Positions 16,171 to 19,100 of a DNA stretch of 60,352 bases are shown piece after piece; position 1 is the stretch's first letter; each line of letters starts with the position of its first letter. The notes below the pieces were generated by a model, which was not told the DNA's origin, made no database searches, and saw only the letters and a program-made list of their open reading frames with translations. Both the position numbers and the translations under genes were made by a program. The DNA is from Macrostomum lignano (Eukaryota): assembly GCA_002269645.1 (NCBI GenBank), contig NIVC01004109.1, forward strand, positions 1-60,352. The letters run 5' to 3'.

Positions 16171-19100
16171 TCAGCCTTTGAAGACGTCCGGCGCGGAGAA
16201 GAGAATGGCGCAGGTGGAAATGACGGTGAAGCAGGAGAAGATTATTAAGCAGAGTCTGTCCACCACCCTCGCGGCGAATTTCCACTCGCTGCTAATCTCG
16301 CCATCGGCCGTGTCGTCGGCGATCTTCTTGGTGATGACCTGGAGCTCGCGGACAACGGCGGCCAGCTCGTTGCGGGTGCTGCAGTTCGAGCCGCAGGAGG
16401 GACCACCGCCGCCGCCGCCGCCGCCGCCGCCGCCGCCGCCGCCGCGCTCCGCTCCGCCGTCCATGCTGCTGCCCATCACGTTCTGATAGGTGGGTGGCGA
16501 GAAGGCCCCTGCGCTAGCGCCGATGCCGCTGACCCCGACACCGCCCACGCCGCCCACTGTCCGGATGTCGTCCTCGAGGTCGAGCACATTGGCTAGCAGA
16601 GACTTGGACGAGCGCTCCTTCAGCTCCACGTTGGCGTTGGCGGCTTCGCGATACGAGGATGTCCGGAAGGAGGCGTTCTTTCTGCGGCGCAGGTAGATTG
16701 GCTCCTTCTCCTCGTCTCTGTGATGATTCCTCATGCACAGGATGTTTGCCAGGTAGGTGCAGATGAACTTTTTCACCTAAGAATAAGGAGGATTCGGCGG
16801 CGGAATCTTTGTGTTGTGTGTAACAAGAATGCTCAGCTGAATTAATAGTTACATGTGCACGTAAATGGTCAGTTACGCCATGTTTAACTTGAGGTTTAAC
16901 AAAAATTCTTAAGAAGCCTCACCCAGTTGGGCACAGGATGCGACTCAGCGTCTCTATGATGATAATTGAGCACAATGACGGTGAAGACCACGGACAAGCT
17001 GCACATTACCATGGTGCAGGAGAAGTACATGCCTAGAGTGGGCAGGTTGGGTTTAAAGACTTCCTTATCGTAGTCATTTTCCCATAGAAACAGGAAATTA
17101 TTCTTAATTACAATACTTAATTATTTTTAAAAAGTAGTGCAATAGTTAATCAAAACAAGCAGCGCCCTTCACCACAAAGTATAGGATTAGTAAAATCGCT
17201 CTCGCAAAGTCAGTCAATAGTATAATTTTACCGCTGAACAGAGTTGGGTAAATTTCGGTACAGGCTAACCTGTTGAAGATATACATGTAAGATAGCTAAA
17301 GATGATCCATCTATAAGACGTGCGTTTAATTTTTTTGCAAACTAGTAATATTTTACAAAAAAACTTTGCTAACTATCCCTAGCTATAATGTTTTCTCAAT
17401 GTGTACTTTAGTAAATCTGGCAATATCTTCACTGAATTAAAATACCAGACAAAGTCATCTTACCATGTAGAGCTCTACACAGATGGATTCGTGATACAGG
17501 AGTATAGAGTTCTGTTCTTCGTTAAATTCTTTCAATTATCTTAAATTGAGTATCAGGAATGTTATCGTCAAATTCCTCCCTGCCACACTCACTGTACACT
17601 GCTGTGTCATCAAATTCCTCCCTGCCCCACTCACTGTACACTGTGCTATCAAATTCCTCCCTGCCCCACTCACTGTACACTGTGCTATCAAATTCCTCTC
17701 TGCCCCACTCACTGTACACTGTGCTATCAAATTCCTCCCTGCCCCACTCACTGTACACTGTGCTATCAAATTCCTCCCTGCCCCACTCACTGTACACTGT
17801 GCTATCAAATTCCTCTCTGCCCCACTCACTGTACACTGTGCTATCAAATTCCTCTCTGCCCCACTCACTGTACACTGTGCTATCAAATTCCTCCCTGCCC
17901 CACTCACTGTACACTGTGCTATCAAATTCCTCCCTGCCCCACTCACTGTACACTGTGCTATCAAATTCCTCCCAAGGTTCGATTCACTGTACATCTGTTT
18001 CTTGGCTATTTTCAGAATTAGTATCTATACTTTTTTCAGCTACCACCATTTCGAGCGACCGATATCTACAGCCGCTACAGCGCATTATTTCGACACTTCT
18101 AAAGCTTAATTTCTCTCCAATTCACTGGGAACTACAACGTATGTGTAGAGTAGATTAGCCCAGCGGCGTAGCAACCTCACCTATCAACGGCACAGCGTCT
18201 GATGTTGGCGGCATGGACTCAGCGACCATCATAAGAAACACTGTTAGTGACAGCAGGATTGTGACCCCTGATAAATGCAAGGCGCAGGGCATTCAGGTTA
18301 GCTGGGTTAGCAATTGTTGTTGGATCTGTCCGTCAGAATGGATGATCATAGTGGCCTTGGTTTGAGCAGCCCCCTCTCCCTTCCCCAGGCCCTATTTCGA
18401 CTTGAGCAAGGCATCACGCGCTGTTAGAAAATATTTTCAGGAAAATGTAGGTAAAAAAAGAATGTCAAAAGATGCGTCGATAAATTTTCAGGCAAAAGCA
18501 TGCGCGCAGCAAATCCAAGGTGACTGAAACAGAGCAAGCAAGCGGTGTTGCTGAGTTCACGCAACACCAATGGTAAGCTAAGAAACGTAAAAAAATATTG
18601 TTATCAAGCAAATGCGTAAAGGAATATTGAAAAGGCGTTTGCATGATTAACAAAATCATGGCAATTGTTAGTTGTGCCGTAAAATCATCAGAGACAGCCC
18701 ACCACCCCATCATCGGTTTTAATAAAAAAACAGCAAACCAAACCGAACTCCTGTCGCCAAGCAAAGCACTCAGAGTTGCCAACGAAAGCCTCACCAATTA
18801 GCGGCACAGACTCTGACGTCTGCGGCATAGCGTCAGCCACTAGCAGTTGAAACATTGACAGTGACAGCATAATTGTCACTCCTGGGATGAGTTCGATTGC
18901 ACAGCATGATCGGGGGATTGCGGTTTGAGCAGAATGGTTGGTTCATTGAAATTGCGAACTCACCTCTTTTTTTACAGACTGTCTTGTTTAATCAGCATTT
19001 CGATTGCTAGTTTACTAAACTGTTCATTGTGGTATTTACACGGTTGGTTAGTCCAATTTGTCACCGCTAAAATACAGAAGCTCCTTCCGGTAAAACTGCT

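Follow-up and report, generated by a model that had tools for sequence, protein, structure and literature searches.

Duplicated pore-lining exons, probably mutually exclusive, in an alpha7-like nicotinic receptor gene of the flatworm Macrostomum lignano

Results

An alpha7-like receptor gene with three clusters of duplicated exons

The window that we analyzed is a stretch of 60,352 nucleotides from Macrostomum lignano (contig NIVC01004109.1). On its minus strand lies a gene that, judging from its translation, is an alpha7-like nicotinic acetylcholine receptor (nAChR) alpha subunit, from the group of alpha7, ACR-16, and insect alpha5-7, and hence a Cys-loop pentameric ligand-gated channel (Table 1). 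The gene product contains the ligand-binding domain (PF02931, E = 1.8e-59) and the transmembrane domain (PF02932, E = 2.3e-53) of this family. Its best matches in the PDB are all human alpha7 (the closest structure is 7KOO, with E = 2e-113; alpha4 reached 2e-84). The best relatives in the sequence database are other alpha7-like proteins of M. lignano, and the names of the matches include alpha-7, acr-16, and insect alpha5/6/7. The Cys-loop (C-x13-C) is in exon 5, and the vicinal cysteines of loop C (YDCCP), which are the signature of alpha subunits, are encoded by both copies of exon 7.

Three clusters of duplicated exons are present: 3a/3b, 7a/7b, and 8a/8b. The gene shares the Cys-loop, the vicinal cysteines of loop C, the GEK filter, T6', and L9' with vertebrate CHRNA7 (PDB 7KOO and 7KOX). 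It differs in that exons 3, 7, and 8 are single in vertebrates, while in the flatworm gene exons 5 and 6 are fused and loop F has a cysteine-containing insertion of 23 amino acids. The exon 5 donor is of the GC-AG type (gcaagt), and all other splice sites are GT-AG. The exon sizes of 45, 110, 195, 87, and 110 nt are presumably those of human CHRNA7 exons 3, 4, 7, 8, and 9; if so, the duplicated unit would be an ancestral exon.

Table 1. Exons and intronic elements of the alpha7-like gene, in order of transcription
Feature	Position in window	Strand	Length	Content or evidence
Exon 1, coding part	38062..38115	minus		Signal peptide; tblastn with the N terminus of P0007, 94% identity
Exon 2	27984..28150	minus	167 nt	
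Exon 3a	25588..25632	minus	45 nt	
Exon 3b	24186..24230	minus	45 nt	Used in P0007
Exon 4	23013..23122	minus	110 nt	
Exon 5	21745..22061	minus	317 nt	Cys-loop, loop B, loop F with 23-aa insertion
Exon 7a	20299..20493	minus	195 nt	Loop C (YDCC), M1, M1-M2 loop, GEKVSFG (M2 -2' to 4')
Arm A	20227..20272	minus		27-72 nt downstream of the 7a donor
Exon 7b	19451..19645	minus	195 nt	Alternative copy, ending in GEKISLG
Exon 8a	18795..18881	minus	87 nt	M2 5'-20' and M2-M3 loop; sequence, phase, acceptor cag, donor gtgagg
Intron 8a-8b	18268..18794	minus	527 nt	Contains arm B
Arm B	18336..18381	minus		69-114 nt upstream of the 8b acceptor; complementary to arm A
Exon 8b	18181..18267	minus	87 nt	M2 5'-20' and M2-M3 loop; sequence, phase, acceptor cag, donor gtgagg
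Exon 9	16923..17032	minus	110 nt	M3; constitutive acceptor partner of 8a/8b
Exon 10	16171..16776	minus		Cytoplasmic loop (poly-Gly), M4, stop codon

Two copies of exon 8

The original prediction described a duplicated M2 exon whose copies are identical at 18 of 29 residues, and reverse-complement translation bore this out. (The count includes the glycine whose codon is split at the shared boundary; it is 17 in the set used for trees.) The two copies are adjacent and clearly homologous, they have the same length and the same canonical splice sites, and they are in the same phase: each begins with the last two bases of a glycine codon and ends with the first base of another. At the DNA level, 63 of the 87 nt are identical (72%), and the codon differences are 7 synonymous and 11 non-synonymous. 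In a tblastn search, the M2 segment of human alpha7 matched both copies far beyond chance (E = 1.7e-7 for 8a and 7.7e-8 for 8b). Given this arrangement, 8a and 8b are tandem duplicates that very probably serve as mutually exclusive versions of exon 8.

We also considered whether the pair could be due to an assembly error, or whether 8a and 8b could belong to two adjacent truncated genes. Assemblies of M. lignano are highly redundant and rich in repeats, and nearly every intron of this gene is filled with minisatellites. However, the layout 7a-7b-8a-8b-9 is found in three separately assembled copies of the locus with diverged introns, and on this comparison we rejected both readings, which we regard as extremely improbable. 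In the two other copies (L007 and L008), 8a and 8b are both present and identical to those in the window, which rules out an assembly artifact. Models of paralogs show the same layout, 8a and 8b are just 72% identical at the DNA level, and only one set of exons 1-5 and 9-10 surrounds the duplicated exons.

Pore residues that differ between the copies

We numbered M2 from K0' of GEK and anchored the numbering on an alignment with human alpha7 (PDB 7KOO), which reproduced the residues in the original prediction. Exon 8a encodes M13', Q15', L16', L17', and D20', and 8b encodes V13', L15', M16', M17', and E20'; T6' and L9' are common to both. In the M2-M3 gating loop, 8a has Q24' and E27', and 8b has P24' and D27'. 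Across the paralog family in Macrostomum, only 13', 20', 24', and 27' are diagnostic of the exon type, and the differences at 15', 16', and 17' are specific to this gene. The prediction also stated that both copies of exon 8 keep the cation-type filter GEK (with E at -1'). The motif is conserved, but translation places it in exon 7, where both 7a and 7b encode it, and not in exon 8.

The choice between 8a and 8b would alter the upper lining of the pore (M or V at 13', LL or MM at 16'-17', and D or E at 20'), and the 6' ring, the 9' ring, and the GEK filter would be the same with either exon. Positions 13', 16', 17', and 20' had been said to shape the function of alpha7. For 20', this attribution needs correction, as control of conductance by this position is a result from muscle-type receptors rather than from alpha7. 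The literature does support the other three: PMC4959957, which summarizes Revah 1991 and Bertrand 1992/1993/2008, documents 13', 16', and 17' as determinants of desensitization and Ca2+ permeability in alpha7, and also reports that allosteric modulation of alpha7 depends on the segment from 19' to 28'. We would thus expect two cation channels that differ in desensitization and gating kinetics, in divalent permeability or conductance, and in sensitivity to modulators.

Use and conservation of the two copies

Two RNA-seq-derived models in GenBank (BOX15 models P0003 and P0007) join exons 7b, 8a, and 9 and skip 7a and 8b. These models come from a genome-guided assembly of RNA-seq reads in which only dominant isoforms were kept and minor ones were dropped by design. 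The dominant isoform in the whole animal is 3b+7b+8a. We searched the protein database, including with a short query that spans the junction, and none of the transcripts or protein models from this locus has 8b, 7a, or 3a spliced in, which is weak evidence, as the database does not seem to contain RNA-derived ORFs from M. lignano beyond BOX15. Three ab initio models (P0001, P0002, and P0008) chain 8a and 8b together by reading through the intron, which is a typical misprediction for mutually exclusive exons. A paralog model (P0011), whose source is an earlier annotation, has a clean predicted junction of 7a-like, 8b-like, and 9.

The original prediction would be undermined by a copy that is never spliced in. 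Exon 8a is spliced in (P0003 and P0007); for 8b of this gene, it is conservation that points to use. Similarly, we infer that 8a and 8b are mutually exclusive rather than observe it. Because 87 nt is a multiple of three, a transcript with both copies or with neither would stay in frame and escape nonsense-mediated decay. Three mechanisms of exclusion were ruled out: steric hindrance, as the intron between 8a and 8b is too long (527 nt); incompatibility of U2 and U12 sites, as every splice site is GT-AG, except for the GC-AG site at exon 5; and frameshifts followed by nonsense-mediated decay, as the exon lengths (87, 195, and 45 nt) are each divisible by three.

Comparisons between gene copies suggest that both 8a and 8b are under purifying selection. 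A paralog (P0005) carries both types of exon 8, in the order a then b. Both exon types recur in diverged paralogs, across which 8b-type exons are 79-93% identical and so match the constitutive exons (70-94%) in conservation. Among the three copies of this gene, the exons taken as a set differ at 1 position in 674 nt, as compared to about 45 mismatches in 2,900 nt of introns; this comparison speaks to constraint on the exons as a group and has no power for a single exon of 87 nt.

Could 8b be a silent relic, that is, a pseudo-exon that is never spliced in this gene, or one that is used only in other paralogs, so that 8a alone is used here? All of the evidence-based models of this gene (P0003 and P0007) use 8a, and the only products of this gene in the database that contain 8b are the read-through ab initio models. 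Loss does occur, since paralog 1 (L006) has lost both 7a and 8b. Nevertheless, we consider a relic to be improbable. The absence of 8b from the models is what the annotation pipeline would produce for a minor isoform. The frame of 8b is open, its AG acceptor is intact, and its donor reads GTGAGG. The encoded segment is identical at 26 of 29 residues to exon 8 of annelids and a nemertean, and at 27 of 29 to the 8b-type exon of a paralog whose remaining sequence is only about 78% identical, which would be unexpected without selection. Also, the 8b acceptor lies 69 nt downstream of the end of a strong and unique stem that is predicted in the introns.

Intronic complementarity between exons 7a and 8b

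This stem would form by pairing of arm A, in the intron after exon 7a, with arm B, in the intron before exon 8b. The pairing extends over 46 nt and has a score of 52, versus a maximum of 40 for shuffled sequences (z = 7.4); it is the sole outlier among 10 pairs of introns. With the arms joined by an artificial linker, the predicted fold has an energy of -50.4 kcal/mol (z = -6.1). Neither arm covers a splice site, and the 7a donor is weak (gtaggg). The arms are not a dispersed repeat or a transposon, as each occurs once in the 60 kb. L007 and L008 carry both arms unchanged, but these copies are 97-98% identical overall and are too alike to offer support from covariation. The arms are absent from L006, the paralog that lacks 7a and 8b.

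Since the stem would connect the region of the 7a donor with the region of the 8b acceptor, it may loop out 7b and 8a and so couple 7a with 8b. A single stem could then act as a switch for two clusters, with the cassette 7a+8b if the stem forms and 7b+8a by default, and the choices at exons 7 and 8 would not be independent. We propose this tentatively and think that it is rather less likely to be correct than not. A resemblance to the control of mutually exclusive exons by docking sites and selectors or by long-range RNA pairing in Dscam1, 14-3-3xi, srp, and ATE1 (PMC4691838, PMC7797038) is that one arm lies close to a donor and the other to an acceptor, so that pairing could bring these splice sites together while looping out the exons in between. 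In contrast to those systems, the flatworm stem spans clusters 7 and 8, instead of there being competing selectors within one cluster, and it is a prediction from sequence. In particular, we found no competing selector upstream of 8a: the intron between 7a and 7b and the intron between 7b and 8a lack significant complementarity (z = 0.5). If the switch is real, it would be a mechanism in which RNA structure coordinates two mutually exclusive exon clusters in the gene for a pentameric ligand-gated channel. We know of no description of such splicing control in the flatworm phylum.

The exon 7 pair is probably older than the exon 8 pair

The 7a/7b pair, which encodes M1 and GEK and lies directly upstream of 8a/8b, is the older of the two. 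Copies of the 7a type are also present in the annelids Capitella and Owenia, the nemertean Lineus, and the brachiopod Lingula, which share the pair with the flatworm; the same holds for the exon 3 pair in some taxa. Many arthropod gene models have a duplicated exon 7 as well. The shared M1/GEK pair seems to be an old cluster of alternative exons that has apparently gone unreported. A neighbor-joining (NJ) tree of exon 7 did not resolve orthology across phyla.

Independent or ancient origin of the exon 8 pair

In insect alpha6, exons 8a/8b/8c are mutually exclusive, as are exons 3a/3b (Grauso 2002; Jin 2007, PMC1919356). The insect gene belongs to the same alpha7-like clade as the flatworm gene, with insect alpha5, alpha6, and alpha7 as co-orthologs. 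The claim that the same exon is duplicated in insects held up: insect gene models have tandem units of 29 amino acids with matching boundaries, which start after GEKxxxG, end in PL[IL]G, and run from the 5' position of M2 to the M2-M3 loop. Exon 3 (45 nt) is duplicated in both genes too, and in both the exon 8 variants differ mainly in upper M2 and the M2-M3 loop, with 6' and 9' fixed. The differences, besides the phylum, are that the flatworm gene has two copies of exon 8, as compared to up to three in insects; that the adjacent exon 7 pair is an addition in Macrostomum; and that the insect variants were verified by RT-PCR, whereas the second flatworm copy is known from sequence. Beyond insects, alternative copies within this clade include exon 3a/3b variants of alpha6 in the tick Ixodes ricinus (PMC13578988). 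In ticks, only the exon 3 variants have been described experimentally; tandem copies of exon 8 in Argiope and Hyalomma (a spider and a tick) are observations from gene models.

The original prediction left open whether the shared duplication is convergence or a very old feature. We conclude that 8b is the ancestral or canonical type, that 8a, which lies upstream of it, is the copy that diverged, and that the duplication is most likely independent of arthropod exons 8a/b/c; the two lineages would then have evolved in parallel from the same inherited exon structure. In the orthologous loci of Capitella, Owenia, Lineus, and Lingula (one gene per species), a sensitive scan found a single exon 8, which is of the 8b type. 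The order of the variants is also reversed: in arthropods the canonical copy is first and the divergent copy is last, but in Macrostomum (in this gene and in paralog 2) the divergent copy is upstream. These two observations together favor an independent duplication in the flatworm lineage. The locus of the trematode Opisthorchis has a single exon 8 of the 8a type, as does one cestode model. The duplication would have occurred before the alpha7-like paralogs of Macrostomum radiated, and probably before the split from the parasitic flatworms, which retain only the 8a type.

Alternatively, a pair consisting of a canonical copy and a copy with D20' and PQTSE might have existed in the protostome ancestor and might derive from the same event as in insects, with loss in the trochozoan stem that leads to annelids, nemerteans, and brachiopods, and later loss of the canonical copy in Neodermata. 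Exon 8a is identical at 20 of 29 residues to the third exon 8 variant of alpha7-like genes from hemimetabolous insects and at 21 of 29 to odonate alpha6 8c, versus 18 of 29 to 8b. It shares the derived states S12', D20', A21', Q24', and E27' with an insect variant, which fits deep homology and convergence alike. Old mutually exclusive clusters do exist in this gene family, as is evident from exon 7 and, in some taxa, from exon 3, and the two scenarios have similar numbers of events: one duplication and two losses for the ancient pair, versus two duplications and one loss.

The phylogeny of 8a and 8b with arthropod variants, which had been proposed as a check, gave unresolved NJ trees. Flatworm 8a grouped with the insect D20'-type variants and Intoshia, but with a bootstrap of just 0.20, and with Neodermata at 0.29; support was low throughout, and such short exons cannot settle the origin. 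A shared ancient pair is also difficult to reconcile with the single exon 8 in all four of the non-flatworm spiralian orthologs and with the opposite position of the divergent copy in insects and spiders. Furthermore, position 20' of arthropod 8c is D, E, or Q, which suggests recurrent change at these positions. We therefore think that an ancient origin is unlikely, although the shared residues at 12', 20', 24', and 27' keep it in play. Overall, the explanation that we favor, and believe to be probably correct as a whole, is a mutually exclusive 8a/8b pair with 8b as the ancestral copy and an origin independent of the arthropod copies.

Implications for channel diversity and annotation

Alternative pore exons are the main known route by which insect alpha6, the target of spinosyns, has diversified. 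Exon 8 alternatives had so far been traced back no further than the insect radiation (PMC1919356). The flatworm has reused the same exon, most likely independently, with similar substitutions in the outer ring of the pore and the M2-M3 loop. This pattern points to these few positions as a preferred site for tuning homomeric alpha7-type channels. The evidence favors an independent origin, and 8a/8b would then be a naturally occurring case in which ion channel diversity evolved in parallel. Combined with 7a/7b, the pair provides a natural set of four M1/M2 cassettes for studies of desensitization and Ca2+ permeability.

Finally, many automatic gene models, both in UniProt and at NCBI, mistakenly join these alternative exons one after the other, which matters in practice for the annotation of nAChRs from invertebrates and parasites as drug targets.

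The alternative M2 exons

A tblastn search with alpha7 and reconstruction from splice sites gave us a complete alpha7-like nicotinic receptor subunit gene, exons 1 to 10, from the window (table). Its duplicated exons form three clusters, one of which is the pair of M2 exons, 8a and 8b. These were visible as two open exon-like segments on the minus strand (reverse complement of 18170-18290 and 18780-18900), flanked by ...cag and gtgagg, and they have identical phase. Each encodes 29 residues (peptides not shown). As the original prediction stated, 18 of the 29 residues are identical; at the nucleotide level, 63 of 87 positions are identical, and 7 of the codon differences are synonymous and 11 non-synonymous. 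The duplication is old, not recent. We anchored the prime numbering of M2 by alignment to human alpha7 (PDB 7KOO, E = 2e-113), which reproduced all of the M2 residues that had been listed for the two copies.

All eight isoform combinations give an open reading frame (545 amino acids from exon 2 onward). The protein contains both pLGIC Pfam domains and the Cys-loop, and loop-C YDCC and GEK are found in both 7a and 7b. Thus, the GEK filter is kept, as predicted, but it ends the preceding exon and is not part of exon 8. The protein's top database relatives are other M. lignano proteins. Two GenBank Mlig_3_7 contigs (L007 and L008) match the window at 97-98% identity, as expected from the redundancy for which that assembly is known.

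Features of the receptor gene and related loci
Feature	Positions	Strand	Remarks
Exon 1	38115-38062	minus	signal peptide
Exon 2	28150-27984	minus	
Exon 3a	25632-25588	minus	45 nt; DEKNQ... loop D region; duplicated pair
Exon 3b	24230-24186	minus	45 nt; duplicated pair
Exon 4	23122-23013	minus	
Exon 5	22061-21745	minus	GC-AG donor
Exon 7a	20493-20299	minus	195 nt; loop C, M1, GEK; duplicated pair
Arm A	20272-20227	minus	27-72 nt downstream of exon 7a donor
Exon 7b	19645-19451	minus	195 nt; loop C, M1, GEK; duplicated pair
Exon 8a	18881-18795	minus	87 nt; splice-site-aware reconstruction
Arm B	18381-18336	minus	69-114 nt upstream of exon 8b acceptor
Exon 8b	18267-18181	minus	87 nt; splice-site-aware reconstruction
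Exon 9	17032-16923	minus	
Exon 10	16776-16171	minus	
Minisatellite/microsatellite arrays	17568-17973, 19158-19369, 20561-21025, 22084-22919, 23504-23991, 24434-25371, 25715-26178, 26776-27948, 29664-30483, 30962-33523, 34480-34869, 35885-36384, 37627-37903		
Exon 7 pairs in other animals	L001 7428-7964; L004 51808-52272; L005 77692-78873; L002 10685-11580		

Gene models and isoform usage

Two GenBank models of the window gene (P0003 and P0007) join 7b, 8a, and 9, and P0007 also uses 3b. Both come from a genome-guided RNA-seq assembly in which the isoform-fraction filter was set to 0.75 and alternative transcripts were removed; therefore, the dominant isoform is 3b+7b+8a, and any minor ones would have been discarded. 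Protein-database searches found no product of the window gene that joins to 8b, so we infer, rather than observe, the use of 8b in this gene. In UniProt, three ab initio models (P0001, P0002, and P0008) run on into introns and thereby chain 7a to 7b and 8a to 8b, a common mistake of gene prediction where exons are mutually exclusive.

More broadly, two or three alternative exon units are chained in many public alpha7-like models from flatworms, insects, spiders, ticks, and annelids (P0001, P0002, P0005, P0008, P0012, P0019-22, P0030, P0110, and others). This is a systematic annotation error, and it gives spurious extra M1/M2 segments. The frameshifted C-terminus of P0007 (15 residues, not shown) has another cause: a 1-nt deletion in exon 9 of the L008 copy (locus ~31,100), which points to a pseudogenised duplicate or else to an indel error of long-read sequencing.

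Both exon types are maintained in paralogues

Diverged paralogues in M. lignano (56-78% identical overall) have the same two exon types. The model P0005 contains 7a-like, 7b-like, 8a-like, and 8b-like exons in the same order as the window gene; P0011, a predicted UniProt model, has a clean 7a-like/8b-like/exon 9 junction; and P0012 has 7a, 7b, and 8a-like exons. Paralogue 1 (P0004, locus L006) kept only 3b, 7b, and an 8a-like exon, and has lost 7a, 8b, and 3a. In these models, 8b-type exons are as conserved as constitutive exons: those of the paralogues are 79% and 93% identical to 8b of the window, compared to 70-83% for exons 4, 5, and M4. In a tree of exon 7 across the paralogues, the 7a-type exons form one clade and the 7b-type exons another (bootstrap 0.97 and 0.94, respectively), so the exon duplications are older than the paralogue radiation.

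Neither 8a nor 8b varies among the three near-identical copies of the gene, where exons have 1 mismatch in 674 nt, versus ~45 in 2,900 aligned nt, plus many indels, for introns. Just upstream of the real 8a in L006, the 5' part of this exon (GVMIMLSH...) recurs in tandem as three incomplete, degenerate copies (13982-14161), which looks like tandem duplication caught mid-process.

Across the paralogue family, 8a-type and 8b-type exons differ without overlap at 13' (M versus V), 20' (D versus E), 24' (Q/K versus P/A), and 27' (E versus D). Q15', S12', M8', and LL/MM at 16'-17' are specific to the window gene or to subsets of the family.

Expected effects of exon 8 choice

Exon 8 encodes M2 from 5' upward and the entire M2-M3 loop. 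Because the 6' and 9' rings are the same in 8a and 8b, and the -1' glutamate, encoded in exon 7, does not change either, charge selectivity and the hydrophobic gate should be the same in both versions. The copies differ at 13', 16', 17', and 20' and in the AE/AD...P-x-TS-D/E segment. In muscle-type receptors, the 20' ring affects conductance. In alpha7, V251 (13'), L254 (16'), and L255 (17') affect desensitisation; L254 and L255, with E237, affect Ca2+ permeability; and potentiation by PNU-120596 requires the AEIMPATSDS segment (PMC4959957, summarising primary work). We infer two predicted cation channels with different kinetics, divalent permeation or conductance, and modulator sensitivity. 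Family-wide, the difference would be centred on 13' and 20', which face the pore, and on 24' and 27' in the gating loop.

Origin of the exon 8 pair

The proposed parallel with insect alpha6 is supported: functionally, the pair is reminiscent of the alternatively spliced exon 8 there, and it affects the corresponding exon within a shared gene clade. The insect duplications of exons 3 and 8 are at least as old as the insect radiation (PMC1919356), exons 3a and 3b exist in ticks (PMC13578988), and arachnid alpha6 is co-orthologous to Drosophila alpha5/6/7. A literature search found nothing on flatworms.

We scanned orthologous loci by tblastn, with one orthologue per outgroup species. Exon 8 is single and 8b-type in Capitella, Owenia, Lineus, and Lingula (4 of 4), and Opisthorchis has one exon 8, of the 8a type; this type also occurs in a cestode model. 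Many arthropod models have two or three tandem exon 8 units, and as read from these models, the canonical T12'/E20' unit is first and the divergent S12'/S15'/D20' unit is last, whereas in Macrostomum the divergent D20' unit is first. The single exon 8 in outgroups and the reversed order favor an independent duplication in the flatworm lineage, which we consider fairly likely; it probably occurred before the split of Macrostomorpha and Neodermata, with 8b then lost in the parasites.

If instead the duplication were common to flatworms and insects, which we consider unlikely, this would fit the resemblance of Macrostomum 8a to the third variant of hemimetabolous insect alpha7-like genes: they share S12', D20', A21', Q24', and E27', and 8a is as close to that variant (20/29) as to 8b. 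However, variant order and intermediate taxa both come out against the same duplication event as in insect alpha6. Neighbor-joining trees of exon 8 are weak, as they rest on 29 residues (65 for the other exon trees), and bootstraps were at most 0.3 for all relevant groupings. The shared exon boundaries are compatible with either origin. The exon sizes (45, 110, 195, 87, and 110) match those of human CHRNA7 and so look ancestral. Overall, 8a/8b is a tandem-duplicated alternative M2 exon of an alpha7-like receptor in a new phylum, probably with a parallel origin.

A spiralian-wide exon 7a/7b pair was a less expected by-product. Tandem pairs, a then b, are present in the annelid, nemertean, and brachiopod orthologues (Capitella, Owenia, Lineus, and Lingula); Lineus 7a ends with GEKVSFG, as in Macrostomum 7a; and many arthropod gene models have two exon 7 units (PPDSGEKLSLG and PHECGEKLTLG). 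These pairs seem to represent an ancient alternative-exon cluster that has apparently gone unreported. In Opisthorchis viverrini (L003), two exon 7 copies ~1 kb apart (45619-45804 and 46653-46838) encode 100% identical peptides and are probably an assembly duplication or very recent, not an a/b pair. The duplication of the 45-nt exon 3 is like that in insect and tick alpha6; this exon has two copies in Capitella and Lineus (L001 5311/5614; L005 63458/63606) and one in Lingula and Owenia.

Possible mechanisms of mutual exclusion and a candidate intronic stem

As mechanisms of the presumed exclusion, we ruled out steric hindrance (a 527-nt intron separates 8a and 8b), spliceosome incompatibility (splice sites are GT-AG throughout, or GC-AG at exon 5), and frameshift with nonsense-mediated decay (87 is divisible by 3).

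The other less expected by-product was a candidate stem spanning two clusters. An inverted-repeat scan found a 31-nt pairing (46 nt when extended with G-U pairs) between arms A and B. It scored 52 (shuffle mean 32, maximum 40; z = 7.4) and was the sole outlier among ten intron pairs from exon 5 to exon 9. Each arm occurs once in the 60-kb window; linked, they have a fold energy of -50.4 kcal/mol (z = -6.1). The arms are identical in L007 and L008, whose copies are 97-98% identical to the window, and both are absent from paralogue 1, which itself lacks 7a and 8b.

Once the stem had formed, the weak 7a donor (gtaggg) would lie beside the 8b acceptor with 7b and 8a looped out, giving 7a+8b; the default would be 7b+8a. 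This pattern fits the only clean models available, as P0003 and P0007 have 7b+8a and P0011 has 7a-like+8b-like. Even so, we propose only tentatively that the stem might couple exon 7 and exon 8 choice. It would be similar to the approximation of splice sites by RNA pairing at other mutually exclusive exons (PMC4691838, PMC7797038), except that it would span two clusters.

Other features of the gene

Exon 5 corresponds to exons 5 and 6 of the vertebrate/insect layout fused into one. Its GC donor (AAG|GCAAGT; 21744-21739, minus strand) begins a GC-AG intron whose consensus is otherwise perfect. The loop-F region of exon 5 has a 23-amino-acid insertion with two cysteines (25-letter segment not shown), which human alpha7 lacks and P0004 shares. 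A poly-glycine tract, (GGC)n, in exon 10 (~16400-16450, minus strand) has 15 Gly in the window versus 11 in P0003 (L007).

Nearly all introns contain a long minisatellite or microsatellite array (periods of 4-39 nt, up to 215 copies), and one array directly adjoins the exon 5 acceptor. The arrays account for the extremes of GC/AT skew along the composition profile and for most indel differences between gene copies. The downstream neighbor is the gene for the second-largest subunit of RNA polymerase II (RPB2; 11744-6198, minus strand), 98% identical to the annotated L007 gene, and a PDZ-domain gene lies upstream of the receptor gene in L008.
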